This document shows positions 564-62,782 of a stretch of 64,000 nucleotides of DNA, one piece after another. The notes below the pieces were generated by a model. It had not been told where the DNA came from and did no database searches. It was given only the letters and a program-made list of their open reading frames with translations. Origin of the DNA: Ophelia neglecta (lineage: Eukaryota); NCBI GenBank assembly GCA_965285935.1, contig CBDIWN010000045.1, positions 1-64,000 on the forward strand, written 5' to 3'. Every line of letters begins with the position of its first letter. Within the stretch, counting starts at the first letter, position 1. Made by a program: the position numbers and the translations under genes.

Positions 564-630
564 GGCGCCGCCGTATAAAAACGACAGTTCTGTGATGGGG
601 CTCTCCAAGGACGACAAGGGCAGCACTGCG
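564..630 (+). CDS. BMI1: PCGF2/4 (BMI1/Psc-like) gene 1, internal coding exon (linker within RAWUL region; xAPPYKNDSSVMGLSKDDKGSTA)
   Basis: tttcag acceptor at 563 and gt donor at 631. The 67-nt open frame ends in phase 0 and joins the next exon in frame. Position matches the short variable exon before the 'KRYLRCPAA' exon of BMI1. Sequence is not conserved, so confidence is lower. Confidence 0.6.
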
Positions 631-817
631 GTCGGTTTTCTCTTTACACTCTACCTGATCACACAAAAACCTTTCCAAATCATTTTGGTGTATTTTGCTA
701 AACTTTGAATTTGCCTATCCCCCAGTAGTAATAAAAATAAACAGTTTTATCTTAAAAATACAAAGTTATCCCACTTAGAAGGACATTCTTTGTTATTCTA
801 CCATCTTTGTCTGACAG

Positions 818-916
818 ACGGTTGACCGCCGATTCCTATTGTGTCCTGCCGCCCTAACAATAGGCAATCTCAAGAAATTCATCCGCCTCAAATTCGAACT
901 ACCTTCTGACTTCCAG
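818..916 (+). CDS. BMI1: PCGF2/4 gene 1, RAWUL exon (TVDRRFLLCPAALTIGNLKKFIRLKFELPSDFQ)
   Basis: cag/gtaaat boundaries, 99 nt. Translation aligns by eye to BMI1 '[31 protein letters not shown]'. Confidence 0.93.
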
Positions 917-1084
917 GTAAATATCTAGTGTATATATGTATATATATATATACATACATAGAGGGCAATAATAATGAATTTATCTCAATGTCAGTAAGAT
1001 GGAACAGAAACAGTTAATACAAACGACACACAAGAAGTAAAAAAACATGGAGAATGAAATCAACCACGTGACTCAGTCAAATGA

Positions 1085-1252
1085 CAGTAAAACCTGCCTT
1101 AAATACTACCTCTATATTCTGACCACCTGCCAATTCAGACCACTAGTATGAAGTACAGTTTCCATATTTAATGACCTGTCCAAACAGACCGCCTCAAAAA
1201 TAAGACCACCTCTACCCAGTCCTTGAGTGGTCTCAATTCACAGGTTTCACTG
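1085..1252. mobile_element. MITE family A (Tc1/mariner-pogo-type; TIR CAGTRAAACCTG)
   Basis: cagtaaaacctg...caggtttcactg+ta, with internal AGACCACC subrepeats shared with other copies. Confidence 0.85.
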
Positions 1253-1614
1253 TACATTATCACATATATGAAGGTTTTAAGGTAGCAAATGGTTGAAGCC
1301 TCAGTTAATGTTTATCAAGACATGACATTATACTCACAGCGGTGCCTAAATTAGCAGCCGACATTTGAGCATTTAAAGTCCTAACTTTTATTTATTTATT
1401 TATTTATTGAATTTCTTTACCCTGGGTAGCCCTATCAGTTTACAACTGTTATTCATAGGGGCCCAGCTTACAATGTACACGTGAAAGTATTATTAACAGT
1501 ATGTATATGTTCAGTATTTATAATATTTACAGTATATACAATAACTATGACCTTTGACCTAACTTTGACATCTATTTGACCTAATATTCCGCTTCCCTTC
1601 TATTTTCCATTAAG

Positions 1615-1695
1615 ATTGAAGTGTACCACTCAGACGAGAGCCTGAATGATGATTACACATTGATTGACGTGGCCTATATCTACGCGTGGAAACGG
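1615..1695 (+). CDS. BMI1: PCGF2/4 gene 1, RAWUL exon (IEVYHSDESLNDDYTLIDVAYIYAWKR)
   Basis: taag/gtaagc boundaries, 81 nt. Matches BMI1 '[27 protein letters not shown]'. Confidence 0.93.
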
Positions 1696-2705
1696 GTAAG
1701 CTTTGGCTATACTACTTACGAATATAATAGGTGTGAAGGGCGCATCCGGTTATCCAAAAGCTACCGTTACAACGTATTTTTCAAGTCATATTTGGGGTGG
1801 GAGGGGGGGGGGGAAGGGGTATTTCCGCCACTCGGGATCGGCCTTTAATTATACGTGAACTTGGAATTTAAGGTTTAGTTTCTTGTGAATGGGGATTCTA
1901 CAATTGATTCGGGATCAAAGATATCAATTTGCTGGGACAAGGGAATGTTTTGTTTAATTTCCCGTGACTAGGGAATCACTATTTCAATTTATCGAGAAGC
2001 GGGAAATACCTTCTTTCCTAATGGCATGAAAAATGCAGACTTTAAACATCCGTGATTCGGGATTTGCCCGTTTTTCAAACTGGGAACTGGGAACGGGGAC
2101 TTCCCCTCCCCCCACACCCCCCACCCCCACCCCCACCCCCAACCTCCCCTCATATTTGTAAAAGTTCGTTCAGAATCAGGTCATATATCCTTTTGAGGGC
2201 AAATCTCTGTGTAATTAATGCTTCAAAATTCACACTATAAATCAGCTAGCACGGTATACGCAGTTCTCCAACACTATTTTTTTATACCCTATGTAAACAC
2301 AACCATGTGCTCTTCTCTTTTCACTACGGCGTTGTTCATGAAAACACGTAGAAAAGTTCGCCAGAAATCTTATTATTGTCTTGTATATTGCCACCTAGCG
2401 GTAAACTAACGACCAGACTTGTGGCAAGAAGTCCAAATTTGTCCATTATTCGCCTTAAATCAGAAAATTCGGGGAAAAATACAAATGTTACTGAGTGCCT
2501 GGACTCGTTTCGTCACATTCAGCTAGAGATTGGATATCTAATTGCCCCTTAATTCCTATAACTGAAAAAATCGCTGATTAAATATCGATGTATTAAATTT
2601 AAAAAAGATAACATAGAAGCATAATTGTTAACATGTTGATAGGGAGTATAAATTTTTCCCACTTGTCGTGATCTTGTGTTACATGTTGCTACTTTCACAC
2701 ACCAG

Positions 2706-5700
2706 GTGGAGCCGCTGAAGTTATTTTATCGGGTAAGAAGGCCTGCCGATGATAAGTGTGAACTTCCGGTGCAGGTTACGACGCATGCGCCCTCAGAACC
2801 ATCGTCCGCCGGAAAGAGAAAACACGAGCCTGAGGTAACCCTGTCACATGACGTCAAGAGATCACGTGTAGAGATCCGCACAAACGAAAACGAGGCAAAA
2901 TATGACGTCATTGAGGAAGGCGGTGACGCTGACGCCAGTGCAGAGTCAAGTGACACCATCATTTATGATGGAAAGGATGTCGAGGGGAACCAAGACACGG
3001 ATCAGCCCGGTACGGACTGTCAGGGCGTCACCGAAACGCGGAGCACGGACCTTGATTCAGCGTCGAAAAACGGTGATGATTGTGAATATAAAATTAGCTT
3101 CAGGACGTTGGATGATAAGGAGGTAGAATCCGTAATCTGCAAGTCCGTGTTCACACGAACCGACACCGGCCCCATGGAGGACCAGACCGGACACGGTTGT
3201 TGTGATCAAGTTACAGAACAGTCGGCTGGTGTCGGAGCCACTGTGGTCAATGAGAGCCAAAACGCACCGAACCTGACTACAGGTGGCGAGGAGAACTCGA
3301 GCAGGGAGAGTGTCAGGCAAGACGCCCGCCTTCCAGAAACGATGGGCCCTAGTAACGAAGGAGAACCAAAAAATATATTTACAATAATGTCCAAGGTGCG
3401 GTCCATTGCGCCCAAGCCGGGAGCGGAGTCTATGGCGGTGATCCCGGCCGAGGGCACCGTGTGTCCTGCCCCGTCGCTCTCCTCCCCGGTCGAGCCGCTG
3501 CCATTCTCCCGCTCCCCCGTCACTAAACCTGTCCTCACCCAGAAGAGACAGGGTTCCCTGCCCCCGATCACTATCAGTAAGCGATGGATACCTAATCAGG
3601 TGACCGTGCCCAAGGCCAGGCCGGTTACCGCTCCCGCCTCCCAGCCCAAGGCTCCGGACCTCGGCAGCGGGGGTCGTTCTCCGGGGGCCAAGCCGGCCAG
3701 CCCGGCGAGGAAACTGCTCCTGACGGGGGGCAACAGGGCTGTGCCGAGCTCACTCGCTAACACCATCGGTAGAAGTGCTTCCAGCGCCAAACACGACAAA
3801 CCCGCGGGCCTGGCTAACCCCTCGGGCCGGCACCTGTCCGCTCCTAGCCCGAGTACCCGCCCGGGCCTGGGGGATACCGGCCGGTCTGGGTCCACCTCCC
3901 GGCAGGGCACCCGCGATGTCCACAACAAACACACCGGCGGGCCAGTGTCCAACACCTGGCATAGTAACCCACCGGACCAGGCTTCAGGTGGTAGCCACTC
4001 CGACACCTCACAACCTCCCGGCCCTGTGCCTCCTGCCCCCATATCGAAGTCCCCTGTCTCCATATCTAAGGCCCTCCTCCCTTTGTGTAAAGTAACCTAT
4101 CCCCGTAAACTGGCCCCAAAGGGCAGTCCTAACAACGGCCATTTACACAGATCCCCCACCAGGACCTCGTCAAGCGCGCCTAACCCCGTCGGGGCCGGCC
4201 GCGGCAAGGCGCTGCCATCTAACTCCGGGGGCTTGGGTAGGGGTTCGCCTAACTACCGGGGGCTGTCTCCCAAGTTGGCTATGAGGGCATTGGGTGCAAG
4301 GGCAGTGCCCAAGACACCCGCTCCCCAGGCCGTAGTCATTCCAAGCGGGCTTAAGACCTTCACGGTGCGGCCGGGCACCTTCACGTCTCTTCAAAACGGG
4401 AGTATCCCCCTGTGTACCATGGCCCCCGCCCAGGTCCTGGCCACCCTGAGCGGCTCCAGGGGCACGGTGGTCATCACCAGCGGGGTGAAGATCCAGACAC
4501 CCCCTTCATCACCTACCTCCCCCTCCAAAGTCCTCAACAACTCCCTTCCCACAGGCCTCTCGGCCGTCATAGACAAGCTCTCCTACAGGAGTTCTAAAAC
4601 GCTGTCCTTCAACCCAGCTGCCAAGGTCACCGCGCATGGCAACTCAGCAGCTAATATCACTGCGCATGCTCCGGACTGCGGCTGCTCTCGGTGCAGAAGA
4701 GATCATTCTTCGGTACCTTCCACTTCTGCTGCTAAAACATTACCACGGTCGAAAATTCCCGGTTCAGACTCTCCTGAGTGTCATTCACGGGGGCCGAAAT
4801 CCCCGGGTTCAGACTCCCGTGAGGGTCAGTCACGGGGGCCGAAATCTCCGGGGAGAGCTTCTCCCAAGGGCCAGTTACAACGGCCGAAATCTCCGGCATC
4901 AGTGTCGCCGGGGAGTAATAGGAAGTCTCCCCAAGTGGGCACCTGCCTCATACCACAGCTGGGAAGGTCAGCGGCGCCCCCTGGGAACAAGAGCATGCTC
5001 CCCTCCAATGTGACAGCCTCAGCTAACATAGCATCCGCCTGTATGGTCTACTCGGCGCCAGGGGGAGGCTCTGTTCCCGCCTCTGGTCACCCTGCTTCTC
5101 CCTCCGTTATGGACACAGCGCCCCTGGCGTTCACTTCTGTCATCAGCTGCGGTGGTGTCTCTCTCGAGTATCAAACCGACTCGCAGTCGCCTACCGTACC
5201 CCCCAGCCCCAGTCCCGTGGCCAGTAGCCATGGAGCCGGCAGTAGCTCGCATGACCTGACGCCCAGTCAAAGTCCAGCACCTGAATGTACTACCATAAGG
5301 TCCGAATCAACAAATAAACATGGGTACATCCCAATACCCAATATTCAAATCGAGGGAGTACCTAGTCAGTCTACAGATATCAATATACAGACGCCTATTC
5401 AAACCTCTACGACCCCTATACAATGTGCACCGACGATACCCTCGTCTTCACCCAAAACCCCCGAGGCTATGTCAACCTCTACATTAACTGGGCAGTCCGA
5501 ACAGACTCCAGTCCTTACACCATTTGATAGCACCTCCTCCCCTTTACAGATCTCCACAGATCCCCTCAGTCAGAGTCTAACCACCAATGCGGCAGTAGAA
5601 AACTCGCTAGGACAGAGCTGTGACTCGCGAACTGCCTTGGATCTTCCCCGTCACGGCCATAGCCCTAAACCAGACCCGTCATCTCAGCCACCTGAACACC

Positions 5701-8516
5701 CCCAGGGCACTCCTCCCGACAGCCACATAACAGTACAGGCTGTACCCTCGGTAGCAGCGGCTCCGCCCTTTAGCAAGACAGTTTGCCCACCAATCACAGT
5801 GGCAGACGCTGCTGAGTCGCCTGTCGTCATGACACCGCTTGCCACACCCCTTCCAGGGACAGACACTGTGGACCTGCCCGTTACTGTGACAGAACCAGTG
5901 GTTTCAACCATCGCCTGTACTGAGGCTATAGCCCCGCCCCAAGCCTCGACAGAGGATGTAGCTCCGCCTCTAGCAGTGACTCGTCCTTTAACTCCGCCTC
6001 TCATCGGGACACAGATATTATCCCTTCCTCTGTGTATGCCCCAGCCTATGATGCCTTCTCTCGCCACAACCCAGCCAATGGCGCCACCCATCTCTTTGCC
6101 ACATACAGTGGCCCCGCCCCTCAACGAGAAAAACAATATGGCCCCGGCCCTCCCTCAGCAGACTTTAACGCCTCTCCCCACTCTGACGCACCCTGCGGCC
6201 ACCGATAGCTCTTCCCACAATGTGCTTACACCCCAGACACCGGCGCATTTAATGACTGAAGTTAAGACATTGGTTTCGGACCAGATGACGTCATCCCAAG
6301 CCTCGTCACAAACTTTGCCTTTCCCTAGCACGCCCATGTCTGTGGCGTCACCGATTGGAGAGGGGTCTGTCATGCCTTCCTCGTTACACCACCCTAGCCC
6401 CGCAGAATCCAGTCAACCAGAGTCTGTCACTCCTTACCCCACCACAGTGGCGCCTCTCCCAGACCTCGCTGCTCATGTAGCGACCCCGGCCTCTGCTCCT
6501 TACCCCATCGCAGTGGCGTCTCGGCCCGACCTCGCTCCCCAGGTATCCCTCCCGGGCTCTGCTCCTTACCCCATCGCAGTGGCGTCTCTCCCCGACCTCG
6601 CTGCTCATGTATCTCCCCCGGCCTCTGCTCCTTACCCCATCACAGTGGCATCTCGCCCCGACCTCGCTCCCCAGGTATCGCTCGCTTCTCCATACCACCA
6701 GCACTCTGTCTCTTCACTTTCTCCAGCCCCAGCGCTCGCTCCCACAACAAACACAGTAGTACGCTTTGCCGCCCCGTCTCCCCCCACACACGTATCCCTC
6801 GCCGCCCCGTCTCCCCCCACACACGTGACCCTCGCCGCCCCGTCTCCCCCCACACACGTGACCCTCGCCGCCCCGTCTCACCCCACACACGTATCTCTCG
6901 CCGCCCCGTCTCACCCCACACACGTGACCCTCGCCGCCCCGTCTCACCCCACACACGTGACCCTCGCCGCCCCATCGAACCCCACACACGCACCCCTCTC
7001 TACATGTTCCCCCACACCACACCCACTGCAGTATTCTGCCGAAAACACGGGGCTTATCATGTTGGCCAATGTGGCCCAAGGTGCTGCCAAGTCGCTGACC
7101 TGCCCGACAATGTTTAGCCCGGGGTCTTTTCCCACGTCTCCCATCATTCCTGGTCCTCCAGCCCTATCCCCAACTCGGGCGACACCCTTCACCATGCCCG
7201 TGAATTCGGTCCTGCACCCGCCTTCTTCCTCGAGCTCTGAATCCTTCGCCCTGCCCGGGACGGCGGTGGTTACGGCCCCTCCGGCCGTATCTTCTGGCCT
7301 CTCAAGGACCTTCTCCAAGCCAATGACCTCCGTGGTGCATTGTCCCCCGGTCGTGTCCACTAGGCCGCCAGGGGTCGCTGCCATACAAATGGTACCTCCT
7401 AGCTTGCCTTTGAGACCCTTGGCACCCCGCCCCCTGGTGGTCACTCTGTCTCCCGCCGGTGGTTTGGTTGCCCCGCCCGTGATGGTTTCCAAGACATCAG
7501 TTGAGACCCAGACGCAGACCTCTGATAGCTTAGAGGATATCCAAACGAGGTACTCCACCACTCACCCAGCATCCCCTCACGCCCCCCTCCCCAACCGACG
7601 TCTGTCAAATCACAAAGACTCCTCCCCCTCACACCAGACCACGCCTCCTCCCGCCTCCAACCCCGCCCACTACAACACAAACTCCGGTAACTCACCTCTT
7701 TATCACACTAGCTCTTCCTCTGCCCCCCACACCACCCGCCACATCGCTACACACAGAAACCCTTCGCCCTTGGAGAGTAAATACTCGTTATCACCTCTCC
7801 CAAATGACGTCATCAACGAGCAGGAGCCACCAATCAAACGGCTTAAAATGATGTGTCACGGCATAGACGCTGAGCAGTCACGTGAGCCACCTTGTTCGGT
7901 CGCCAATCAACCTCATAGGTCCACACTTCCAACTGCTCAGCGACAGCAGGCCAACGGAAGTCACGCTTCCGGTGGCCGAGCGTCTGATCCTCGGAGCTTG
8001 ACGCTAGGAGGCGCCCCGGATAGGTTTTCTCCACCCTCCTCGCTTGTTAGTAACCAATCGCCCCTCCAGAGGCCGCCTCTGGGTATCCACGGCCCTCGCG
8101 GTCCGATGGTAGCCCCGGTTGTTGCCATGATATCACATAGCAACCATTCCCACGCCCTCAGCCCTACACCCCAGAAATCTGTCGTCGGTAGCTGCACCCA
8201 GTCACCCCATTCCCCGCTTAACACAGCCTCAATCCATATCAACTCGCCGCCATTCTCTCCGCTCGTCGCCCCAGGCAACAGTGGTCGCTATAACAACAAT
8301 GTGCGTCACGGAGTCGCCCGTCCTATTCAAAACAACAACAATAACAATAAACGAGACATTATCGGGGTCAACCAACCGGAGAGCACCCTGCTGGCCAACG
8401 GATATGACGCGCCTCTTGAACTGACCACCAAACGCAGCCGGGACCGCAAGAAAGAGGAAATGCAGGGGACGACAACAAACTCTCCTATTATCGCTCCTCC
8501 TCCTCTACGATCCTGA
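2706..8516 (+). CDS. BMI1: PCGF2/4 gene 1, terminal exon: end of RAWUL (VEPLKLFYRVR) plus ~1,930-aa low-complexity Psc-like C-terminal region
   Basis: cag acceptor at 2705, in frame with the previous exon. VEPLKLFYRVRRP corresponds to BMI1 NGPLPLKYRVRP. Uninterrupted 5,811-nt frame to TGA; P/S/T-rich. Confidence 0.92.
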   Translation: MEPLKLFYRVRRPADDKCELPVQVTTHAPSEPSSAGKRKHEPEVTLSHDVKRSRVEIRTNENEAKYDVIEEGGDADASAESSDTIIYDGKDVEGNQDTDQPGTDCQGVTETRSTDLDSASKNGDDCEYKISFRTLDDKEVESVICKSVFTRTDTGPMEDQTGHGCCDQVTEQSAGVGATVVNESQNAPNLTTGGEENSSRESVRQDARLPETMGPSNEGEPKNIFTIMSKVRSIAPKPGAESMAVIPAEGTVCPAPSLSSPVEPLPFSRSPVTKPVLTQKRQGSLPPITISKRWIPNQVTVPKARPVTAPASQPKAPDLGSGGRSPGAKPASPARKLLLTGGNRAVPSSLANTIGRSASSAKHDKPAGLANPSGRHLSAPSPSTRPGLGDTGRSGSTSRQGTRDVHNKHTGGPVSNTWHSNPPDQASGGSHSDTSQPPGPVPPAPISKSPVSISKALLPLCKVTYPRKLAPKGSPNNGHLHRSPTRTSSSAPNPVGAGRGKALPSNSGGLGRGSPNYRGLSPKLAMRALGARAVPKTPAPQAVVIPSGLKTFTVRPGTFTSLQNGSIPLCTMAPAQVLATLSGSRGTVVITSGVKIQTPPSSPTSPSKVLNNSLPTGLSAVIDKLSYRSSKTLSFNPAAKVTAHGNSAANITAHAPDCGCSRCRRDHSSVPSTSAAKTLPRSKIPGSDSPECHSRGPKSPGSDSREGQSRGPKSPGRASPKGQLQRPKSPASVSPGSNRKSPQVGTCLIPQLGRSAAPPGNKSMLPSNVTASANIASACMVYSAPGGGSVPASGHPASPSVMDTAPLAFTSVISCGGVSLEYQTDSQSPTVPPSPSPVASSHGAGSSSHDLTPSQSPAPECTTIRSESTNKHGYIPIPNIQIEGVPSQSTDINIQTPIQTSTTPIQCAPTIPSSSPKTPEAMSTSTLTGQSEQTPVLTPFDSTSSPLQISTDPLSQSLTTNAAVENSLGQSCDSRTALDLPRHGHSPKPDPSSQPPEHPQGTPPDSHITVQAVPSVAAAPPFSKTVCPPITVADAAESPVVMTPLATPLPGTDTVDLPVTVTEPVVSTIACTEAIAPPQASTEDVAPPLAVTRPLTPPLIGTQILSLPLCMPQPMMPSLATTQPMAPPISLPHTVAPPLNEKNNMAPALPQQTLTPLPTLTHPAATDSSSHNVLTPQTPAHLMTEVKTLVSDQMTSSQASSQTLPFPSTPMSVASPIGEGSVMPSSLHHPSPAESSQPESVTPYPTTVAPLPDLAAHVATPASAPYPIAVASRPDLAPQVSLPGSAPYPIAVASLPDLAAHVSPPASAPYPITVASRPDLAPQVSLASPYHQHSVSSLSPAPALAPTTNTVVRFAAPSPPTHVSLAAPSPPTHVTLAAPSPPTHVTLAAPSHPTHVSLAAPSHPTHVTLAAPSHPTHVTLAAPSNPTHAPLSTCSPTPHPLQYSAENTGLIMLANVAQGAAKSLTCPTMFSPGSFPTSPIIPGPPALSPTRATPFTMPVNSVLHPPSSSSSESFALPGTAVVTAPPAVSSGLSRTFSKPMTSVVHCPPVVSTRPPGVAAIQMVPPSLPLRPLAPRPLVVTLSPAGGLVAPPVMVSKTSVETQTQTSDSLEDIQTRYSTTHPASPHAPLPNRRLSNHKDSSPSHQTTPPPASNPAHYNTNSGNSPLYHTSSSSAPHTTRHIATHRNPSPLESKYSLSPLPNDVINEQEPPIKRLKMMCHGIDAEQSREPPCSVANQPHRSTLPTAQRQQANGSHASGGRASDPRSLTLGGAPDRFSPPSSLVSNQSPLQRPPLGIHGPRGPMVAPVVAMISHSNHSHALSPTPQKSVVGSCTQSPHSPLNTASIHINSPPFSPLVAPGNSGRYNNNVRHGVARPIQNNNNNNKRDIIGVNQPESTLLANGYDAPLELTTKRSRDRKKEEMQGTTTNSPIIAPPPLRS
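6432..6693 (+). repeat. Coding tandem repeat, 66-bp/22-aa unit x4 (PYPxxVAxxPDLAxxVxxPxSA), alternating A-B-A-B
   Basis: ccttacccc recurs at 6432, 6498, 6564 and 6630. Confidence 0.9.
6766..6990 (+). repeat. Coding tandem repeat, 33-bp/11-aa unit x~7 (AAPSxPTHV(S/T)L)
   Basis: Near-identical direct repeats in DNA and protein. Confidence 0.92.
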
Positions 8517-13372: not shown

Positions 13373-14900
13373 AGGGCCCTGGGCCAGCTTGGTTTGAGAA
13401 GAAGAAGGGTTTGGAGAGAGCCAGCTTGGTTTGCGAAGGGCCGGCAGAGAGCCAGTTTGGTTTAAGAAGGGTGTGGAGAGGGCCAGTTTAGTTTAAGAAG
13501 GGCCTGGAGAGAGCTAACTTGGTATAAGAAGGGCCTGGAGAGAGCCAACTTGGTTTAAGAAGGGTCTGGAGAGAGCCAGCTTGGTTTAAGAAGGGCCTGG
13601 AGAGAGCTAACTTGGTATAAGAAGGGCCTGGAGAGAGCCAACTTGGTTTAAGAAGGGTCTGGAGAGAGCCAGCTTGGTTTAAGAAAGGCCGGGAAAGAGC
13701 CAGCTTGGTTTAAGAAGGGCCGGGAGAGAGCCAACTTGGTTTAAGACGGACCTGGGGAGAGCTAACTTGATTTAAGAAGGGCCGGCAGAGAGCCAGCTTG
13801 GTTTAAGAAGGGCCTGGAAAGAGCCATCTTGGTTTAAGAAGGGCTTGGAGAGAGCCAGCTTGGTTTAAGAAGGGCCGGGAGAGAGTCAGCTTGGTTTAAG
13901 AAGGGCCTGGAGAGAGCCAGCTTGGTTTAAGAAGGGCTTGGAGAGAGCCAGCTTGGTTTAAGAAGGGCCGGGAGAGAGTCAGCTTGGTTTAAGAAGGGCC
14001 GGGAGAGGGCCAACTTGGTTTAAGAAGGGCCAGGAGAGAGCCACCTTGGTTTAAGAAGGGCCGGGAGAGAGTCAGCTTGGTTTAAGAAGGGCCGGGAGAG
14101 GGCCAGCTAGGTTTAAGAAGGGCCTGGAGAGAGCTGGCTTGTTTTAAGAAGGGTCTGGAGAGAGCCACCTTGGTTTAAGAAGGGCCGGCAGAGTGCCAGC
14201 TTGGTTTAAGAAGGGCCTGAAGAGAGCCAGCTTGGTTTAAGAAGGGCCGGGAGAGAGCTAGCTTGGTTTAAGAAGGGCCTGGAGAGAGCCAGCTTGGTTT
14301 AAGAAGGGCCGGCAGAGAGCCAACTTGGTTTAAGAAGGGTCTGGAGAGAGCCAGCTTGGTTTAAGAAAGGCCGGGAAAGAGCCAGCTTGGTTTAAGAAGG
14401 GCCGGGAGAGAGCCAACTTGGTTTAAGAAGGGTCTGGAGAGAGCCAGCTTGGTTTAAGAAGGGTCTGGAGAGAGCCAGCTTGGTTTAAGAAGGGCCAGGA
14501 GAGAACCAGCTTGGTTTAAGAAGGGCCGGGAAAGAGCCAGCTTGGTTTAAGAAGGGCCGGGAGAGAGCCAACTTGGTTTAAGAAGGGCCTGGAGAGAGCC
14601 AGCTTGGTTTAAGAAGGGCCGGGAGAGAGCCAGCTTGGTTTAAGAAGGGCCGGGAGAGAGCCAGCTTGGTTTAAGAAGGGCCGGCAGAGAGCCAACTTGG
14701 TTTAAGAAAGGCCTGGAGAGAGCCATCTTGGTTAAAGAAGGGTCTGGAGAGAGCTGGCTTGGTTTAAGAAGGGCCAGGAGAGAGCCAGCTTGGTTTAAGA
14801 AGGGCCTAGAGAGCGCCAGCTTGGTTTAAGAAGGGCCTGGAGAGAGCCAGATTGGTTTGAGAAGGGTCTGGAGAGAGCCAGCTTGGTTTAAGAAGGGCCT
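13373..14900. repeat. Minisatellite, 31-bp unit (agagccagcttggtttaagaagggcc(t/g)ggag), ~49 copies
   Basis: Head-to-tail direct repeats without unique spacers. Confidence 0.97.
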
Positions 14901-17263: not shown

Positions 17264-18858
17264 GCCTACACCGTACAGCGAGGGACCTTTACGGGCCTAG
17301 CCTACACCGTACAGCGAGGGACCTTTACGGGCCTAGCCTACACCGTACAGCGAGGGACCTTTACGTGCCTAGCCTACACCGTACAGCGAGGGACCTTTAC
17401 GTGCCTAGCCTACACCGTACAGCGAGGGACCTTTACGGACCTAGCCTACACCGTACAGCGAGGGACCTTTACGGGCCTAGCCTACACCGTACAGCGAGGG
17501 ACCTTTACGGACCTAGCCTACACCGTACAGCGAGGGACCTTTACGGGCCTAGCCTACACCGTACAGAGAGGGACCTTTACGGGCCTAGCCTACACCGTAC
17601 AGCGAGGGACCTTTACGGACCTAGCCTACACCGTACAGCGAGGGACCTTTACGGACCTAGCCTACACCTTACAGAGAGGGACCTTTACGGGCCTAGCCTA
17701 CACCGTACAGCGAGGGACCTTTACGGGCCTAGCCTACACCGTACAGCGAGGGACCTTTACGGGCCTACACCGTACAGCGAGGGACCTTTACGGACCTAGC
17801 CTACACCGTACAGCGAGGGACCTTATCGGGCCTAGCCTACGCCGTACAGCGAGGGACCTTTACGGGCCTAGCCTACACCGTACAGCGAGGGACCTTATCG
17901 GGCCTAGCCTACACCGTACAGCGAGGGACCTTTACAGGCCTAGCCTACACCGTACAGCGAGGGACCTTTACGTGCCTAGCCTACACCGTACAGCGAGGGA
18001 CCTTTACGGGCCTAGCCTACACCGTACAGCGAGGGACCTTTACGGGCCTAGCCTACACCGTACAGCGAGGGACCTTAACGGGCCTAGCCTACACCGTACA
18101 GCGAGGGACCTTTACGGGCCTAGCCTACACCGTACAGCGAGGGACCTTTACGGGCCTACACCGTACAGCGAGGGACCTTTACGGACCTAGCCTACACCGT
18201 ACAGCGAGGGACCTTTACGTGCCTAGCCTACACCGTACAGAGAGGGACCTTTACGGGCCTAGCCTACACCGTACAGCGAGGGACCTTTACGGGCCTACAC
18301 CGTACAGCGAGGGACCTTTACGGGCCTAGCCTACAGCGTACAGCGAGGGACCTTTACGGGCCTAGCCTACACCGTACAGCGAGGGACCTTTACGGGCCTA
18401 GCCTACACCGTACAGCGAGGGACCTTTACGGGCCTAGCCTACAGCGTACAGCGAGGGACCTTTACGGGCGTACAGCGAGGGACCTTTACGGGCCTAGCCT
18501 ACACCGTACAGCGAGGGACCTTTACGGGCCTACACCGTACAGCGAGGGACCTTTTCGGGCCTAGCCTACACCGTACAGCGAGGGACCTTTTCGGGCCTAG
18601 CCTACACCGTACAGTGAGGGACCTTTACGGGCCTAGCCTACACCGTACAGCGAGGGACCTTTACGGGTCTAGCCTACACCGTACAGCGAGGGACCTTTAC
18701 GGGCCTAGCCTACACCGTACAGCGAGGGACCTTTACGGGCCTAGCCTACACCGTACAGCCGGGGACCTTTACGGGCCTAGCCTACACCGTACAGCGAGGG
18801 ACCTTTACGGGCCTAGCCTACACCGTACAGCGAGGGACCTTTAAGGGTCTAGCCTACA
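17264..18858. repeat. Minisatellite, 36-bp unit (cctacaccgtacagcgagggacctttacgggcctag), ~45 copies
   Basis: Highly homogeneous direct repeats with occasional 5-bp deletions. Confidence 0.97.
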
Positions 18859-19607
18859 TTGTACAGTGGGGCGTGTGAACCCCTTTTAAGTCTCGGTAGG
18901 CCTACTCTTTTGTTAAATGACATATGATAATTGTTAGGCCTGAACGACAGCCCGCCGGCCTTCACAGCGGAGATCGGCGATAAAATGAACAAATGAGTCG
19001 TATTTTACGTAGCCATCCCGGCGCGTTTTCGGGTTCTGGCGGTCTGCTTACAGGAGTAGCTGTTGTCATTCCTGGTACTGTTTACAGAACACAGCTCCCC
19101 GGCGGCTGGCGGCTCCTGCTTGGCTGATATTTCCTGGCTATTGATGCCAGCGGAGCCAGCAGCCAGCAGACGACTCAGCCCCAGCGTTCGTACTCAGACC
19201 GTTTGTACTCAGAGCGGGACTCGGAGCAACACACTCGATCATGGTTACTCGCCAGAGAAGCCAGGCTGCAAAAATCGATCTTGTTCGCCTAAATATAGCT
19301 CAGCCTATTTCTCGGTGTTGGTTGCCTTGGTAACGGTCTGACTCGGGAGGTGGATCGCCCCTGACAGCCAGTTGGCGCGGTGCCAGGTCGCCTTGTTTTC
19401 CTGATCTGAGCAGACGACATTGTCGGTCTGACGGTATTTGCTCTGAATGGCGGTTTACCCGGCATGCCCGGCAGGCGGCGGAGCATTACGCTGATTTACA
19501 GTCGGACTTGGGTTATAAATCACTCGCGGTGACGCAGAACGTATTCCTCTCGCCAAATAGCTCCATAACTCACCCGTAATTCACCTGGCCGTGGACTTAA
19601 TGGCCAC

Positions 19608-20900
19608 CGCCAGCCGGGGATCTAAGGGGGTCGCTCAGGGGTCGGGGCTCCGGGGTTCAGGGGCATCACTGGCCGGGATCTGAGGGGGTCGGTCAGGGGT
19701 CGGGGCTCCGGGGTACATGGGCATCACTGGCCGGGATCTGAGGGGGTCGCTCAGGGGTCAAGGCTCCGGGGTACAAGGCCATCACTGGCCGGGATCTGAG
19801 GGGGTCGGGGGCTCCGGGGTACAAGGCCATCACTGACCGAGATCTGAGGGGGTCGGGGGCTCCGGGGTACAAGGCCATCACTGGCCAGGATCTGAGGGGG
19901 TCGCTCAGGGGTCGGGGCTCCGGGGTACATGGCCATCACTGGCCGGGATCTGAGGGGGTCGGGGCTCCGGGGTACATGGGCATCACTGGCCGGGATCTGA
20001 GGGGGTCTGGGCTCCGGGGTACAAGGCCATCACTGGCCAGGATCTGAGGGGGTCGGGGCTCCGGGGTACAAGGCCATCACTGACCGAGATCTGAGGGGGT
20101 CGGGGCACCGGGGTACAAGGCCATCACTGGCCGGGATCTGAGGGGGTCGCTCAGGGGTCGGGGCTCCGGGGTACATGGGCATCACTGGCCAGGATCTGAG
20201 GGGGTCGGGGCACCGGGGTACAAGGCCATCACTGGCCGGGATCTGAGGGGGTCGGGGCTCCGGGGTACAAGGCCATCACTGGCCAGGATCTGAGGGGGTC
20301 GGGGCTCCGGGGTACAAGGCCATCACTGGCCGGGATCTGAGGGGGTCTGGGCTCCGGGGTACAAGGCCATCACTGGCCAGGATCTGAGGGGGTCGCTCAG
20401 GGGTCGGGGCTCCGGGGTACAAGGACATCACTGGCCGGAATCTGAGGGGGTCGCTCAGGGGTCGGGGCTCCGGGGTACATGGGCATCACTGGCCGGGAAT
20501 TGAGGGGGTCGCTCAGGGGTCGGGGCTCCGGGGTACATGGGCATCACTGGCCGGGATCTGAGGGGGTCGCTCAGGGGTCGGGGCTCCGGGGTACAAGGCC
20601 ATCACTGGCCGGGATCTGAGGGGGTCGGGGCTCCGGGGTACATGGGCATCAAAGGCCGGGATCTGAGGGGGTCGGTCAGGGGTCGGGGCTCCGGGGTACA
20701 AGGCCATCACTGGCCGGGATCTGAGGGGGTCGGGGCTCCGGGGTACATGGGCATCACAGGCCGGGATCTGAGGGGGTCGGGGCTCCGGGGTACAAGGCCA
20801 TCACTGGCCGAGATCTGAGGGGGTCGGTCAGGGGTCGGGGCTCCGGGGTACATAGGTATCACTGACCGGGATCTGAGGGGGTCGGGGCTCCGGGGTACAT
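19608..20900. repeat. Minisatellite with 47-bp and 58-bp unit variants (ggccgggatctgagggggtc[gctcaggggtc]ggggctccggggtacaaggccatcact)
   Basis: Direct repeats with interspersed long and short variants. Confidence 0.96.
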
Positions 20901-30886: not shown

Positions 30887-31015
30887 NNNNNNNNNNNNNN
30901 NNNNNNNNNNNNNNNNNNNNNNNNNNNNNNNNNNNNNNNNNNNNNNNNNNNNNNNNNNNNNNNNNNNNNNNNNNNNNNNNNNNNNNNNNNNNNNNNNNNN
31001 NNNNNNNNNNNNNNN
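30887..31015. other. Assembly gap (N run)
   Basis: N bases. Confidence 1.
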
Positions 31016-41455: not shown

Positions 41456-41489
41456 TTAGTTAGAATCAAGAAAATGGATATCCGATGTA

Positions 41490-41667
41490 CAGTGAAACCT
41501 GTAAATTGAGACCACCCAAGGGACTGGAAAATACTGGTCTCATTATAGAGGTGGCGTCTTTACACAAGTTATTTTACATTGAAAATGTACAGTATGGTCT
41601 TCATATAAGTGGTCTGAATTGACAGGTGGTCTTAAGATAGAGGAGGTCTTTAAGGCAGGTTCCACTG
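41490..41667. mobile_element. MITE family A, full copy flanked by TA
   Basis: ta|cagtgaaacctg...caggttccactg|ta. Confidence 0.9.
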
Positions 41668-43497: not shown

Positions 43498-43698
43498 GGC
43501 AGTGACCTGTTTACGGCAGTGACCTGTTTACGGCAGTGACCTGCTAACGGTAGTGACCTGCTGACGGCAGTGACCTGTTTACGGCAGTGACCTGTTTACG
43601 GCAATGACCTGTTTACGGCAGTGACCCGCTGACGGCAGTGGCCTGTTTACGGCAGTGACCTGTTTACGGCAGTGGCCTGTTTACGGCAGTGACCTGCT
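43498..43698. repeat. 17-bp tandem repeat (ggcagtgacctgtttac) x~12
   Basis: Direct repeats. Confidence 0.95.
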
Positions 43699-45677
43699 AT
43701 TAGCCGGTATACGTTATCTGTTTGTCAAAGATCTCCACCCATAGGTGTGACAATTATCTGCCGAAAATATAAAAATTGATTTGATATTTCGAACTGCATA
43801 GAACCCATGGAACCTTGTATGAACTAAGGCTTAGAATAGAAAGACTGAAACTCGTAATATGTTGACTGAGAGTTGTTTTAATAAATAACAATGGTCCATT
43901 CTTTTCAAAACAAACTCAATTTGCGAGCTATGTCTGAACGAAAACACTATTTGGCTTTCTAAATGTGGGTCTATCTATTCCGCCAGCCACCTGTCCTTTC
44001 GTCTATAGTCAATGTCCGGGGCCATTTCATGCCATTTTGTAATCTGGTAATTTGGGTGATTACCTAAATGTATGTTACATCAAAGAGACAACGAGCTTTG
44101 TGTCGTCCATTGTTAGCAAGCTCCATTAGCTCGTTACCGAGAGAGCCAGAGAAAAGTTATCTTTTAAATCAATCACTTCACTGCAGACACGTGTACTCGG
44201 GGGACACAGGGGCCCGGGGGACATGGGGGGCCGGCGATAGGGGAACATTGCGTGTGGTCCTGACGGACAGGCTCTCAAACAACTCATGACTCCCCAAGGT
44301 ATATACACATGTCAGCTGCCATATCAAACAAATTTGTATTCTCAAGTTTACTGTTCAACAAAATAATCAGTTCTGCTGTAATATAATATTTAACATTAAC
44401 GGTAATAATTAATTAAGACACAGTTGATCAAAATGTCAATAAATGATAGAAGTTAACTGTCCTGAGAACTTAAATGGCACCGACGATACAAAATATCCCA
44501 ACACTTATGGTTTCAGGGTATTAACTTGGTTTCACGATGAATGATTTTTCAGTTAAATCTTTGTTTGTGCGACGGAGTGAAAAACGCACCATTCGCTTAC
44601 CCAAGCCATTTAACTAATCTGTACAACTTGTCTAATCATTCATGCAGATTTAAAACTAACTGGTTGTATGTGATACAAATAAAGTCGACGGTATTTTTGC
44701 GCATAAAAAACATGTTGTAAGCAGACGATTTGATGTAAATTCAACTCAAAACAGGTTATTACTGCATTTTGATTTACTCGCTTTACTAGATGATAATTGT
44801 TTCTGCTGCATACACAAATCGGAACAGCGCCAGAGGATAACTGTGGAATAACATGGCAATTCGTGATCATATAGAAACCCTATATAAAAAGAATCGATAG
44901 TGTAATAGCTCTATTGGTCTATCTCTCCTGAAAATCCTTGAAATTTGATTCACATTTTGGTCAGGTTTAGCACAGACTAAATCTACCGTCATTAGTTTTT
45001 TTTTTTTTTTTTTTTTGAAAAATCATTTCTGATGCATATATACAATCTTTAATTTAGCAATATTCATATGGATATATATGCCAGTGCATGAATAGCCTGT
45101 ACCTCAACTAAACGACTTACTGGTAGATATAACGTAAGTTAATTAAGAAATGGGCCTAATTGGACATTTACGACTGTCTTCAGGCAGGAAACGTCTTTAA
45201 ATCCAAGCGCGAGCACTAAAAGTGGCCCCTATTTTTTATAGCACGACTTAAACACGTAAGAGTTGATATGTATTTGCAAGAAAGCCACTGTAATTATATC
45301 TAGGTTTGATGTACCTCCGGCTTGACGTGGTAATTTGGGGCCTTCTAAATTATGTATAATTGTCAGTGTAAGAACCCAGTGTGTGCACTGACTGTGAAGA
45401 AGCTCCATTAATTGATGTCATATTTAATTTGTATGTGTCTGTGTGCTTTCTCATAAACTGTAAAGTATCGAACAAAAAAAGGTTATGTCTATAGAGTTTT
45501 GTTCTTCAATGTATTTGATATGCATGTTTTTATCATAGTATAGCGCGAGCAGCAAAAACACGTGGCCTGCTGGGAGAAAGACGACATTATGTATAAAACG
45601 TTAACAAAAACACAATCTATTGACACCAAATTTATTTATGATAGGGCTCAATTTATGACAAAAATGACACAGTAAAT

Positions 45678-45847
45678 NNNNNNNNNNNNNNNNNNNNNNN
45701 NNNNNNNNNNNNNNNNNNNNNNNNNNNNNNNNNNNNNNNNNNNNNNNNNNNNNNNNNNNNNNNNNNNNNNNNNNNNNNNNNNNNNNNNNNNNNNNNNNNN
45801 NNNNNNNNNNNNNNNNNNNNNNNNNNNNNNNNNNNNNNNNNNNNNNN
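45678..45847. other. Assembly gap (N run)
   Basis: N bases. Confidence 1.
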
Positions 45848-55547: not shown

Positions 55548-55623
55548 ATGGTGGTGGTGGTAATGGTAATGACTGCATATATTGTTTTATTTTTCAGGGC
55601 TGATTGGTCTACCACAGTATAAC

Positions 55624-56110
55624 ATGGCTAACTTCGAACCCCCTTCTGCAAAAGTGCCGAGGCAAGATACTGACTTTCACCTCTGCTTCATATGCCAAAA
55701 AGACACATCCGAACGTCTAGTTGAGAAACCTTCTACCCATGGCAAAGTTTTGGAATGCATCAGAGAGCTGGCAACCTACGGCGATGGAAATTTTCCTGAA
55801 ATCAACAGGAGAGTAGGTGACGCTTCTGTAGAATCCATAGCCTCACAAGGTGCAACTTGGCATAGAAGCTGCCAACAGGACACTTGTCATTCATCAAGGC
55901 GTAAAAGGGCAAAAATACGATATGAACAGTTATTAGCACAGAGAAAACAATCTCACTCTGAGACTCTACTTGAGGGCGAAATTCTCACAATGTCTAATCT
56001 ACACCAAGCGTATGTGGATATTCGGTCAGCGAATTACGTCAAGAAGCCAGACTGTGTCCGGAAAAAGGTCAAAGATCTTATTGAAAATGAGATTCCCGGT
56101 GTAGAGTTTC
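55624..56110 (+). pseudogene. Truncated, internally deleted transposase N-terminus (left arm): MANFEPPSAK...CFICQK...WHRSC...SHS/ETLLEG...GVEFH
   Basis: ORF track 55582-56256. Lacks the segment present in the right arm and runs into the inverted copy. Confidence 0.75.
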
Positions 56111-56855
56111 ATACACCATTAGACATTGTGAGAATTTCGCCCTCAAGTAGAGTCTCTTCCACCAGACTTATAAATTCAATGTCAGCTGCAATTTCATTTG
56201 CTACATTGTCTGTTGGTGTTTCAGATGATTTACGGCGGAGAACATTGGTTACATGAGTGGTCCAACACTTGTTGTGATATCGAATATCAATAGCATGTGC
56301 ATCTTTGGGGTTTATAGCAGTGCTGAGCTTCACACGGAAGTTGTCATTGTTACTCATTTCAATGGCTGAATGAAGATGCCATCCAGCAGCATCAGTCCGT
56401 ACTTTAGATAGTGGATGGCGATAAGAACCTTCTTTCTCACAAAAGAAGCAGACATCACTGTCATATGGTTTCGACTGAGACCGTGTAAAATTGGTGGCAG
56501 CAGGCAAAGGAATTGGTGCAGAGTGAGATTGTTTTCTCTGTGCTAATAACTGTTCTTATCGTATTTTTGCCCTTTTACGCCTTGATGAATGACAAGTGTC
56601 CTGTTGGCAGCTTCTATGCCAAGTTGCACCTTGTGAGGCTATGGATTCTACAGAAGCGTCACCTACTCTCCTGTTGATTTCAGGAAAATTTCCATCGCCG
56701 TAGGTTGCCAGCTCTCTGATGCATTCCAAAACTTTGCCATGGGTAGAAGGTTTCTCAACTAGACGTTCGGATGTGTCTTTTTGGCATATGAAGCAGAGGT
56801 GAAAGTCAGTATCTTGCCTCGGCACTTTTGCAGAAGGGGGTTCGAAGTTAGCCAT
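56109..56855 (-). pseudogene. Truncated transposase N-terminus (right arm) with one premature stop (TAT>TAA at 56556-58); CxxC...WHxxC and CFFC...DAHAIDIRYHNKC modules
   Basis: ORFs 56556-56897 and 56109-56507 are in one frame, separated by a single TAA where the left arm has TAT. Confidence 0.78.
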
Positions 56856-56917: not shown

Positions 56918-56970
<53 letters not shown>

Positions 56971-58939: not shown

Positions 58940-59232
58940 TATGTTTTTGTCATTGTTGATTATTTATTTGTTGTTTAGTGTTTGTATACACTTTTGGCCG
59001 TGATGTAGGTGACCCGTCTTAGGGTGTCCCAGTTACACCCAAACCTGACCCCTGTTCTCTCAGCCCGGGGGGGGGGGGGGGGTCTGTACTTACATTTGTT
59101 GTATTATTATTGTTGTTGTTTACTGTTTACTTACTTGTTTGTGTTTGTTTACAGTTTGGCCTTGGGGTGTCCCAGTTACACCTCAACCTGACCCCTGTAC
59201 TCTCAGCCCGGGGGGGGGGGGGGGGGGGGGCT
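58940..59232 (+). pseudogene. Two degenerate tandem copies of the acceptor and 5' part of the first coding exon of gene 2
   Basis: ttggccgtgatgtaggtgacccgtcttagggtgtcccagttacacccaaacctgacc resembles the real ttggccgtgatgtataaggtgacacggctcagggtgcccgagcttcacccaaacctgacc. Confidence 0.8.
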
Positions 59233-59307
59233 GTATTAACTGTCGTTGTGTTTTTGTTGATGTTGTTGTTTACTTACTTGTTTGTGTTTGTTTCCAGTTT
59301 GGCCGTG

Positions 59308-59419
59308 ATGTATAAGGTGACACGGCTCAGGGTGCCCGAGCTTCACCCAAACCTGACCTGTACTCTCTGCGGGGGGTATCTGGTGGACGCCACAACCATA
59401 GTAGAGTGTCTCCACTCAT
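59308..59419 (+). CDS. BMI1: PCGF2/4 (BMI1/Psc-like) gene 2, first coding exon ([37 protein letters not shown])
   Basis: Acceptor at 59297, ATG at 59308, gtaagt donor. Matches BMI1 '[38 protein letters not shown]'. Confidence 0.95.
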
Positions 59420-60627: not shown

Positions 60628-60724
60628 TTTGCCGATCATGTATTGTCCGATACTTCGATCTCCACAACACGTGTCCGAAGTGTAACACCCAGGTCCACAA
60701 GACCCGGCCGCTTCTCAACATCAG
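60628..60724 (+). CDS. BMI1: PCGF2/4 gene 2, RING exon ([33 protein letters not shown])
   Basis: ttgcag/gtgaga boundaries, 97 nt. Completes the C3HC4 RING; matches BMI1 '[33 protein letters not shown]'. Confidence 0.95.
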
Positions 60725-61000
60725 GTGAGATATACACTTCTCAACTTTAATAATATAAATAATACTCAACTTTATTAATATATCAGGTGAGATATACAGT
60801 ACTCAACTATTAATAATATATCAGGTGAGATATACACTTCTCAACTTTATTAATATATCAGGTGAAATATACAGTACTCAATGATTAATAATATATCAGG
60901 TGAGATATACAGTACTCAACTTTAATAATATAACAGGTGAGATATACAGTACTCAACTTTAATAATATATCAGGTGAAATATGCAGTTCTCAATGATTAA
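60718..61000 (+). repeat. ~37-bp tandem repeat containing the splice donor (atatatcaggtgagatatacagtactcaactttaata)
   Basis: caggtga at 60722, 60784, 60822, 60859, 60897, 60934 and 60971. Confidence 0.9.
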
Positions 61001-61015
61001 ACCAATTATCGGTCA

Positions 61016-61175
61016 GATTAGCCTCGATCTGGGATCTGATTAGCCTCATCTGGGATCTGATTAGCCTCATCTGATAAGCCTCGATCTGGGATCTGATTAG
61101 CCTCGATCTGGGATCTGATGAGCCTCAATCTGGGATCTGATTAGCCTCGATCTGGGATCTGATTAGCCTCAATCC
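61016..61175. repeat. ~22-bp tandem repeat (gattagcctcgatctgggatct)
   Basis: Direct repeats. Confidence 0.9.
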
Positions 61176-61998
61176 GGAATATGAATTGAGCTGAAGTCCT
61201 GTTCTGGTTGCCCGGGAAGGGACAAACCCTACACCAGAGCCGCCAGTCGGGGTCGAAGAGAACTTAACTCTCGTTATAGATATTGATCCCCTGACACAGG
61301 CAGGCTCCAGACAAACACTCTTAGTCATTCTCCATCATGCAACAATCTCGATTGCAATAAATCGGAACCGCGCAGTTTCTTATCAACAGAATAACTTGTT
61401 AAGAAATGCCTTTAAGGACACGTACATGGGATTTTTAGATTCCCATCGTGTCTGTATACGATAGGGTATAAACGCTGTCATGTCAGGATGTGTATAATCC
61501 TTCCCATCGTGTCTATATACGGTGGAGGTAAGGGCACTGCCATGTCGTGTGCGCTGCTCATGTTGGTGCCCTAAGCTTTGGAGCCGCCTTGATGTAAAAC
61601 GAGCTCGATGACCTTCAAGTATATAGCACTGGTTCAGGAAATGGACATGTTGTTTTGTAAAGAACCATCTCTTTTGATGGATTCGCTCCTTTTAAAAACC
61701 GCACGGCCTTAAACAAAAACAGAAGACTGTTTGTTTTACGTTTGTATAGAACCAGCGTCACCTGTTTGGCTGACTGGGCTGTGTGTCGGAATCCGGAATA
61801 TTCCTAGTTTAGAAATGGAGGGCAAGAGCTTGATTTTCCACTCATTCTTCTTGGGGTAGAATGTCCGCCCTCCCCTTTGGCGGGACACTTTGTGGGGGCC
61901 CTAATTAACCATACCTTGATCGTTTAACGAGAAGTGATGTTTGCTCTCCGTCTTTACCTTTGTTGACATGACAACTGACTGGTGTTTATTTATTCCAG

Positions 61999-62054
61999 AC
62001 CGGACAAAACGCTTCAGGACTTGGTCTACAAGCTAATACCGGGGCTCTTCAAAG
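61999..62054 (+). CDS. BMI1: PCGF2/4 gene 2, exon (PDKTLQDLVYKLIPGLFK)
   Basis: ttccag/gtaggt boundaries, 56 nt. Matches BMI1 'SDKTLQDIVYKLVPGLFK'. Confidence 0.95.
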
Positions 62055-62734
62055 GTAGGTCCACTCTCGATTGTTGTGTAAACCGATTGCCCGATTAGTA
62101 TAGACATTACGTCAGTCACGTGACACTCAGCCCACCTCCTTGGCACCAATTAAACGAGACAGTTTAAACGACCGCTACAATGAAGTGGAATTAACGTTAA
62201 ATATGGTTGATGTCATTTTCAAAGGGAGCCAAGTACCCCTGGTAGGCAGCCCCCCCCCCCTCCCCTGCCGGACAACGCACCCCTGACTCCTCTCTCTCCA
62301 CCACAATACTCAGATATAATAACTGAGGCAGTAGACTTTGCATAAGATCTAAAGTAAAATAAAGTCTAACGACAAATAAAATATTCCTTTTTTGCTTGGC
62401 AAACAACCTTTCCTCGCCCCTGTCCCTCCCACCGCCTTTCGGGTCTCGCCCCTCCCAGCCTCACAGCTTAACCCCCCCCCCCCCTAGCACCCATCGCCTT
62501 CCGCGCCTCACCCCCTCCCACCGCCTTCCGGGTCTCACCCCTCCCTGCCTCACGGCTTTAACCCTCCCCCCCCCCGCACCCACCGCGTTCCGCCTCACCC
62601 CCTCCCCCAGCCCGACGGATTTAACCCTCCCTCCCCCCGCACCCACCGCCTTCCTCGCCCCTCCCTCTCCCACCGCATTCCTCGCCCCTCCCTCTCCCAG
62701 CCCGACGGATTTAACCCTTTGCCTTATATTTCAG

Positions 62735-62782
62735 AGGAGATGAGACGAAGACGGGCGTATTATAAAGACAACCCCGAAGCCA
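62735..62782 (+). CDS. BMI1: PCGF2/4 gene 2, exon (EEMRRRRAYYKDNPEA); the gene presumably continues beyond the window
   Basis: tttcag/gtaagt boundaries, 48 nt. Matches BMI1 'NEMKRRRDFYAAHP'. Confidence 0.92.

Follow-up and report, generated by a model that had tools for sequence, protein, structure and literature searches.

Psc and Su(z)2, two Polycomb genes of the PCGF2/4 class, are adjacent in the fly genome. As described in 10.1101/2020.06.02.130492, the C-terminal region of Psc is an intrinsically disordered region of ~1150 amino acids that binds DNA and compacts chromatin, and a conserved patch, YKLVPGL, is common to Psc and its homologues in mammals. PCGF2/4 duplicates are lineage-specific, including Psc/Su(z)2 and PCGF2/BMI1, and Psc-like repressive C-terminal regions occur in the PCGF2/4 proteins of several invertebrates, according to 10.1101/2020.03.18.997064. 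In this study, we analyzed a stretch of 64,000 nucleotides (hereafter, the window) from Ophelia neglecta, i.e., positions 1-64000 of the + strand of the unplaced scaffold C53 (153,451 bp), and searched the whole assembly (762 Mb in 223 contigs) for related genes. We propose, with a probability of about 0.85, that two different neighboring PCGF2/4 (BMI1/MEL18/Psc) genes, A and B, lie partly within the window in a head-to-tail array, that they belong to an eight-gene family of which A is a broken member, and that the encoded proteins work in Polycomb repressive complex 1 (PRC1) as outlined below.

Parts of this picture have precedents. The annelid Capitella teleta has eight PCGF genes, and the cluster described by Gahan, Rentzsch and Schnitzler 2020 consists of anthozoan PCGF5/3/6 and not of PCGF2/4 (both from the accessible text of 10.1101/2020.03.18.997064). 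In the literature searched, as far as its text was available, no lophotrochozoan was described as having PCGF2/4 genes in a tandem cluster; the per-species tables of 10.1101/2020.03.18.997064 may bear on copy number. Reports thus exist of PCGF2/4 duplications confined to single lineages, of long tails and of a high PCGF count in an annelid, and the finding is likely to interest specialists without surprising them.

Two different PCGF2/4 genes at the ends of the window

Gene A, at the left end of the window, is the 3' half of a PCGF2/4 gene on the + strand and consists of four exons: one for a linker, two for the RAWUL and a terminal one. The linker exon W1 (564-630, 67 nt, phase 2 to 0), which precedes the RAWUL, has AG/GT borders and an open frame; it was placed by phase and position, without similarity-based support. 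W2 (818-916, 99 nt) encodes the first half of the RAWUL and matched Pfam RAWUL (PF16207) at positions 1-27 with an E-value of 2.7e-6; among solved structures, it matched residues 160-190 of BMI-1 only and no other PCGF. W3 (1615-1695, 81 nt) encodes the second half (Pfam RAWUL 31-56; BMI-1 residues 191-217). The terminal exon (2706-8516, 5811 nt) encodes the RAWUL end 'VEPLKLFYRV' and a low-complexity tail of 1936 amino acids in a single uninterrupted frame of 1936 codons, which ends with the stop TGA and showed no match to a Pfam domain.

Gene B starts at 59308, also on the + strand, with four exons of the RING half; the rest of it lies beyond the window. R1 (59308-59419, 112 nt from the ATG) encodes the first half of the RING, R2 (60628-60724, 97 nt) the second half together with 'HKTRPLLNI', R3 (61999-62054, 56 nt) the 'PDKTLQDLVYKLIPGLFK' patch and R4 (62735-62782, 48 nt) 'EMRRRRAYYKDNPEA', ending in phase 1. 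The series 'C..C...C.H' in R1 and 'C..C...C..C' in R2 form a C3HC4 RING in which all eight zinc ligands are intact. R1 starts at an ATG 12 nt after an AG (59294-59295) and not at the AG acceptor, which suggests an upstream non-coding exon of gene B. All eight exons were found where the original prediction had placed them, on the + strand and with AG/GT borders (R1 from the ATG), at sizes of 67/99/81/5811 and 112/97/56/48 nt; the sizes 112/97/56 that it had likened to the exon structure of BMI1 belong to the RING exons and 99/81 to the RAWUL exons.

The class of the two genes was assessed exon by exon. In Pfam, R1 and R2 contained the halves of the RING (positions 1-20 and 23-40), and W2 and W3 contained the halves of the RAWUL; as the RAWUL is distributed over several exons, each of them alone stayed below the Pfam cut-off for the complete domain. 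The best solved-structure match was BMI-1 for R1, R2, W2 and W3 (residues 1-37, 39-69, 160-190 and 191-217, respectively). R1 scored ~50-60 bits to BMI-1 compared with 35 to PCGF6, 35 to PCGF1 and 30 to PCGF5, the margin for R2 was small (38.7 bits to BMI-1 vs 36.3 to PCGF6), and BMI-1 was the sole structure match of W2 and W3. By these scores, genes A and B appear closer to PCGF2/4 than to PCGF1, 3, 5 or 6. The resemblance to vertebrate BMI1 (PCGF4)/MEL18 (PCGF2) extends to gene E, a further member of the family described below, which starts with 'MHRTTRLKITDLN'; however, the full-length BMI-1 chain in the structure bank has 326 amino acids, whereas the genes of the window family add 470-1936 amino acids after the RAWUL.

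The window alone would also fit a single PCGF gene whose contigs were mis-ordered in scaffolding, with its RING exons on the right and its RAWUL and tail exons on the left: the two halves do not overlap, three gaps lie between them and the left half sits at the scaffold start. The sequence downstream of 64000, where a RAWUL had been proposed as a check, makes this very improbable. Exon M1 of gene B (C53:64665-64776, 112 nt, peptide '...EEKISLTLQHYN', phase 1 to 2) fits the exit phase of R4 and is followed by its own RAWUL exons W2 (66270-66368) and W3 (67288-67368), which matched Pfam RAWUL at positions 1-27 and 32-56, and by a tail exon that starts at 68310 and encodes 1061 amino acids; the parts from W2 to the tail span 66.3-71.5 kb. 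Gene B is free of N over its whole length, and exon 62735-62782 therefore need not join exon 564-630. In addition, the RAWUL exons of genes A and B are only 55% and 63% identical, and their tails have only a 14-residue motif in common. M1 was found by three-frame reading, as a regular-expression search had matched the 'ISL' exon in gene C only; tblastx comparison between the R4-W2 introns of the paralogs for middle exons returned only a repeat resembling short interspersed nuclear elements and G-rich repeats.

DNA reads over C53:60000-65500 (three runs, one sample) yielded short contigs only. Word depth was ~8-28 over the unique parts, including R3, R4 and M1. Every contig was broken by repeats, R4 and M1 remained unbridged and the R2 bin was nearly empty in two runs. 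These contigs give no independent support for the gene B model and say nothing on expression.

The RING half of gene B is accompanied by several local repeats. At 59018-59304 on the + strand, a 143-nt unit composed of the intron end and the first ~60 nt of R1 occurs twice in tandem, in degenerate form and directly upstream of the intact R1, each copy ending in a long poly-G run, with a pseudo-copy at 59009-59059; the copies reflect a triplication at this site or else a stutter of the assembly. Directly after R2, a 37-nt minisatellite (60763-60993) repeats the exon end and the splice donor ('CAGGTGAGATATAC'). A like repeat occupies the same intron position in the gene on C183, a contig discussed below (6027-6137, with 'HKTRPLLDI' twice). 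Short interspersed repeats were present at window positions ~1795-2100 and 62880-63560 (4818 and 7311 candidate copies genome-wide at first look, respectively); they are 84-93% identical across the genome and also occur in introns of genes C and D.

An eight-member family of diverged paralogs

The copies of the family were found by whole-assembly searches with single exons. BMI1-class copies accounted for eight of the 13 R2 matches and all eight W2 matches, so that the genome contains eight RING-exon and eight RAWUL-exon copies of the class. The predicted tandem paralog pair therefore stands as far as separate head-to-tail paralogs are concerned, and it is not a pair: at least three genes lie on C53 and eight in the genome, in three clusters. 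On C53, one W2 match (66273-66365) lies 3.5 kb downstream of the RING exons of gene B, and a third gene, C, follows on the + strand. Its exons begin at 90846 (R1), 97755 (R2), 99621 (R3), 100482 (R4), 103017 (W2) and 103276 (W3), its tail of 562 amino acids begins at 104763, the gene spans 90.8-106.4 kb, the 'ISL' exon is present, and its RAWUL exons match Pfam RAWUL like those of gene B. On C2, the minus strand carries genes D and E in head-to-tail order, with R1 at 7,841,565 and 7,766,656, and genes F, G and H lie on C1 at 130.61, 131.39 and 131.61 Mb. Three more distant PCGF genes, with only 40-55% identity, are located elsewhere on C1.

As a side observation, R2 and R3 are fused in D (C2:7840668-7840814), F, G and H, where the intron is absent and 3 nt separate the matches; the R2-R3 intron is kept in B, C, E and the C183 gene.

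We then compared the copies with each other. Identities, Nei-Gojobori counts and the tree are sums over separate exon alignments (117-158 codons for Nei-Gojobori). Over the conserved exons, genes A/X to E were 61-74% identical to one another (e.g., 79/122 for A/X-B, 96/152 for B-C and 100/158 for B-E) and 57-63% identical to F, G and H, which were themselves 94-99% identical. The proportion of synonymous differences (pS) among A/X to E was 0.67-0.93, i.e., synonymous sites were saturated, and the nonsynonymous proportion (pN) was 0.16-0.28, the lowest value of all pairs being that of genes A and E (0.158). Among F, G and H, dS was 0.17-0.35 and dN/dS 0.03-0.10; G and H were identical at 150 of 152 positions, with a dS of 0.17. 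Saturated synonymous sites with low pN fit old paralogs rather than haplotigs or one mis-ordered gene. The sequences thus point to A to E as old paralogs, to F, G and H as younger ones and to purifying selection on the domains.

The same values bear on whether the copies could be allelic haplotigs or assembly duplicates, with C53 and C183 as alternative haplotypes of the C2 locus. Both are unplaced, and two similar genes are arranged head to tail in the same way on C2. However, each query exon matched at 100% at only one place in the assembly, protein identity with the genes on C2 was 61-74% and synonymous sites were saturated, whereas alleles would be expected to differ by a few percent at most. 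We regard this explanation as extremely unlikely and copies A to E as non-allelic, in line with the reading as an array of distinct genes.

Long relatives were found in other invertebrates. A search with R1 of gene B against 1.84 billion representative proteins gave 768 matches at E <= 0.001, of which the best 150 were examined. Long proteins among these 150 included those of Littorina saxatilis (XP_070210919, 2070 aa), Cherax quadricarinatus (2125 aa), Plakobranchus ocellatus (GFO24472, 2093 aa, 'polycomb complex protein bmi-1'), Mercenaria mercenaria (1272 aa, 'suppressor 2 of zeste-like'), Pinctada imbricata (1132 aa), Paralvinella palmiformis (KAK2161044, 869 aa), Tachypleus tridentatus (960 aa) and Thrips palmi (998 aa, 'Psc-like'). 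The long mollusc, annelid and arthropod PCGF2/4 proteins are 60-78% identical to the window genes over the conserved exons. The outside protein P0078 was identical to gene E at 123 of 158 positions, and the Paralvinella protein was closest to gene C (112/152). Two partial proteins of the gastropod Batillaria attramentaria, P0085 and P0125, are encoded by BaRGS_00028856 and BaRGS_00028858 on one 853-kb contig; therefore, this species too probably has a tandem PCGF2/4 pair.

An exon-wise tree of 31 rows and 161 columns was computed with 200 bootstraps. Equivalents of all six exons were present in 48 outside proteins, of which 21 were included; the remaining 27 are mostly 300-600 amino acids long and vertebrate-sized, and o41 of the window genome, which has no RAWUL exon match, was also left out. 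Support of at least 50% was obtained only for F/G/H, for a gastropod group and, weakly, for the bivalve Pinctada with P0031 (58%). Deep nodes were unsupported, and none of A-E grouped with outside proteins at 50% or more; the pairings of E with P0078, C with Paralvinella and D with Mercenaria are suggestions only. By analogy with the lineage-specific duplicates of other animals, the duplication is probably separate from that of Psc/Su(z)2.

The family resembles Psc/Su(z)2 in several respects: a RING and RAWUL region is followed by a very long low-complexity tail (here 470-1936 amino acids), the paralogs form a head-to-tail cluster, their tails cannot be aligned between paralogs and the YKLVPGL patch is kept. 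It differs in having eight genes in three clusters instead of two genes, with spacings of tens of kb filled by minisatellites. Compared with Capitella teleta, with eight PCGF genes in all, this genome has eight PCGF2/4-class genes plus three other PCGF genes.

Tails, the C-terminal motif and the proposed PRC1 role

We next considered the tails. Their lengths are 1936 (A), 1061 (B), 562 (C), ~1520 (D) and 1048 (E) amino acids, and ~470-490 amino acids in F-H. They are rich in P, S and T, lack Pfam domains, contain internal tandem repeats and are mutually unalignable. Disorder was judged from composition: tail A has 15% P, 14% S and 75% disorder-promoting residues, with tandem repeats of 33-nt and 66-nt units. 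The criterion of high positive charge for Psc-type tails reportedly comes from Beh et al. 2012 (PNAS 109:E1063). Net charge per 100 amino acids was +1.2 for A, +5.3 for B, +9.3 for C, +8.6 for D and -0.3 for E; within tail A, residues 61-180 form an acidic block and 241-780 a basic one (net ~+51), and a long part is neutral. A search for relatives of tail A found no protein of 1065-3388 amino acids at E <= 0.001, and the last 61 residues of tail B gave three word-sharing candidates, none at E <= 0.01.

The sole block common to tails A, B and E is a conserved C-terminal motif, located in gene A at 8391-8459 on the + strand (LANGYDAPLELTTKRSRDRK). The motif, NGYDAPLELTTK, was also present in P0078 (1023 amino acids) and, among the outside relatives, in this protein only. 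The ends of tails A, B and E read LANGYDAPLELTTK(R/K), and genes A and E are identical at 21 of 23 positions of the motif; a weaker block, 'PI(K/R).LK..C(H/N)GI', is shared by tails A and E. The 'PLELT' core of NGYDAPLELTTK presumably fits the PxDLS-type pattern for docking of CtBP. PxDLS-like motifs were also seen at or near the C-terminus of other invertebrate PCGF2/4 proteins, such as 'GPLDLSTSHRH' (P0027) and 'ALDLTLSHRH' (Tachypleus); proteins with such ends are P0027, P0041, P0099, P0122, P0124 and P0128. The Littorina and Plakobranchus proteins and two unnamed proteins have 'MPLDYS' there. All of these recall 'APLELTTK' of the present genes. In the literature searched, as far as its text was available, PCGF tails were not described as carrying motifs like PxDLS.

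The sequence data show how the genes are built, which domains they encode, that they are old paralogs and that the domains are under purifying selection; from this we infer expression, complex formation and tail function. By analogy with BMI1 and Psc, the RING of each protein would pair with RING1, giving the core of the H2A ubiquitin ligase, and the RAWUL would dock Polyhomeotic. The fast-evolving disordered tail may act like the C-terminal region of Psc, binding DNA or chromatin and compacting it. The paralogs would then be alternative, mutually exclusive subunits, giving rise to several canonical PRC1 variants.

Alternatively, the tails may not be Psc-like compaction regions at all and instead be fast-evolving spacers with short docking motifs, or largely neutral low-complexity expansions driven by the minisatellite-rich DNA. 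One or two short motifs are the only alignable tail sequence, tail A contains 33-nt and 66-nt repeats, and tails A and E are near neutral in charge. Against this, an open tail of at least 470 amino acids is retained in all eight paralogs, the tails of B, C and D carry a strong positive charge and 540 amino acids of tail A form a basic block; Psc-like repressive regions also occur in the PCGF2/4 proteins of several invertebrates (10.1101/2020.03.18.997064). We take this alternative seriously and consider it somewhat unlikely, preferring a Psc-like role of the tails.

A further proposal goes beyond the Psc-like role and is put forward as speculation that is itself unlikely to hold: the eight paralogs would be non-redundant and form distinct canonical PRC1 variants, in which the basic tails (B, C and D) serve as compactors and A, E and B keep NGYDAPLELTTK for possible CtBP docking. 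Vertebrates recruit CtBP through CBX4. If motifs of the NGYDAPLELTTK type bind CtBP, invertebrate PRC1 would recruit the corepressor via the PCGF tail, and such a shift in CtBP recruitment would parallel that of the compaction function, which is reported to have moved from Psc to CBX2.

The scaffold and the probably broken gene A

Position 1 of the window is position 1 of C53, and the assembly holds no sequence upstream of it. Therefore, the 5' part of gene A is missing because the scaffold start, and not the window edge, cuts the gene. The three assembly gaps, which are N runs, lie where they had been claimed, at 30887-31015 (gap 1), 34434-34606 (gap 2) and 45678-45847 (gap 3), all downstream of the gene A stop codon (8516) and upstream of the gene B start codon (59308). 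As all three are intergenic, no exon, intron or frame of gene A or B is interrupted. A fourth N run of C53 (119271-119370) is outside the window, and the stretch 45848-119270 is free of N and contains the whole of genes B and C. Of the contigs that make up the scaffold, the first (1-30886) contains gene A and the fourth (45848-119270) genes B and C; the B-C tandem is in continuous sequence, and the A-B adjacency is not. With three gaps between A and B, their order, orientation and '51 kb' spacing are scaffolding statements. An inverted first contig would need the RING half of gene A in 31016-45677, where tblastn found no RING exon; the present orientation is thus at least self-consistent. For the head-to-tail arrangement at ~51 kb that had been predicted, the adjacency and spacing of A and B accordingly rest on scaffolding over three gaps.

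Among the sequences examined between genes A and B, no recognizable gene was found, as had been predicted. The 13 longest non-repetitive open reading frames, out of 67 of at least 90 amino acids between 8.6 and 59 kb, had no Pfam match (0/13), so that intergenic open reading frames were rejected as a host gene, and Rfam gave no match. At 55573-56555, overlapping frames of 227 and 148 amino acids on opposite strands, without a Pfam match, both contain 'LLEGEILTMSN' at the overlap. Minisatellite arrays at 13402-14900, 17264-18866, 19617-20899 and 21592-22088 fill much of the stretch; their units are 31 nt x 48, 36 nt x 45, 47-58 nt and G-rich.

A candidate for the missing part of gene A was found on C183, a contig of 15,378 bp on which R2, R3 and R4 mark another RING half; this half runs off the low-coordinate end. 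The terminal repeats of C183 (positions 1-1700) are a minisatellite of ~47 nt and a (GA)n run, its last 1.8 kb are minisatellite, and the start of C53 (window 1-200) is a G-rich repeat of 14-15 nt. The repeats at the C53 start and the C183 end probably explain the assembly break inside gene A. This orphan RING half could be the missing 5' part, and the eight R2 and eight W2 copies pair 1:1 only if C183 supplies it. Gene A is probably split between the scaffold start and the 15-kb orphan contig.

Gene A might instead be a real 5'-truncated remnant, with RAWUL and tail but without RING, that is decaying or used RING-less. No RING exon lies upstream, as C53 begins there, and the sole unpaired RING half, that of C183, lacks R1, ends in a minisatellite and does not overlap C53. 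However, the frame of 1936 codons is intact, AG/GT borders are kept in all four exons, the C-terminal motif has diverged from that of gene E at only two of 23 residues and pN to E is the lowest of all pairs, and the numbers of RING and RAWUL halves (8 and 8) match only when C183 is paired with gene A. We therefore consider a remnant quite unlikely and retain the reading of gene A as a gene broken by the assembly.

Several points weigh against the proposal as a whole. The order and orientation of A and B hang on three gaps whose flanks lack continuity, as no 14-mer is common to the two sides of any gap within 1 kb. For gene A, C53 contains no RING half, and the gene could be a truly truncated copy. 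On C183, exon R1 was not found with three motif patterns, the 'ISL' exon was not found, and no sequence overlap with C53 was detected. In gene B, a linker exon of phase 2 to 0 corresponding to 564-630 is still expected within 64777-66269, where 65209-65263 is the best candidate. No RNA run covering the window was found. Finally, tails A and E are not strongly basic overall, and a Psc-like compaction role is less obvious there.

In practical terms, the locus marks where the assembly is broken. For the family, it provides a larger example of a duplication pattern known in other animals, with the C-terminal motif NGYDAPLELTTK as a small new lead. PCGF subunits decide which kind of PRC1 forms; eight long-tailed canonical genes under purifying selection are a natural experiment on the diversification of PRC1 outside vertebrates and on the role of the Psc-type tail.

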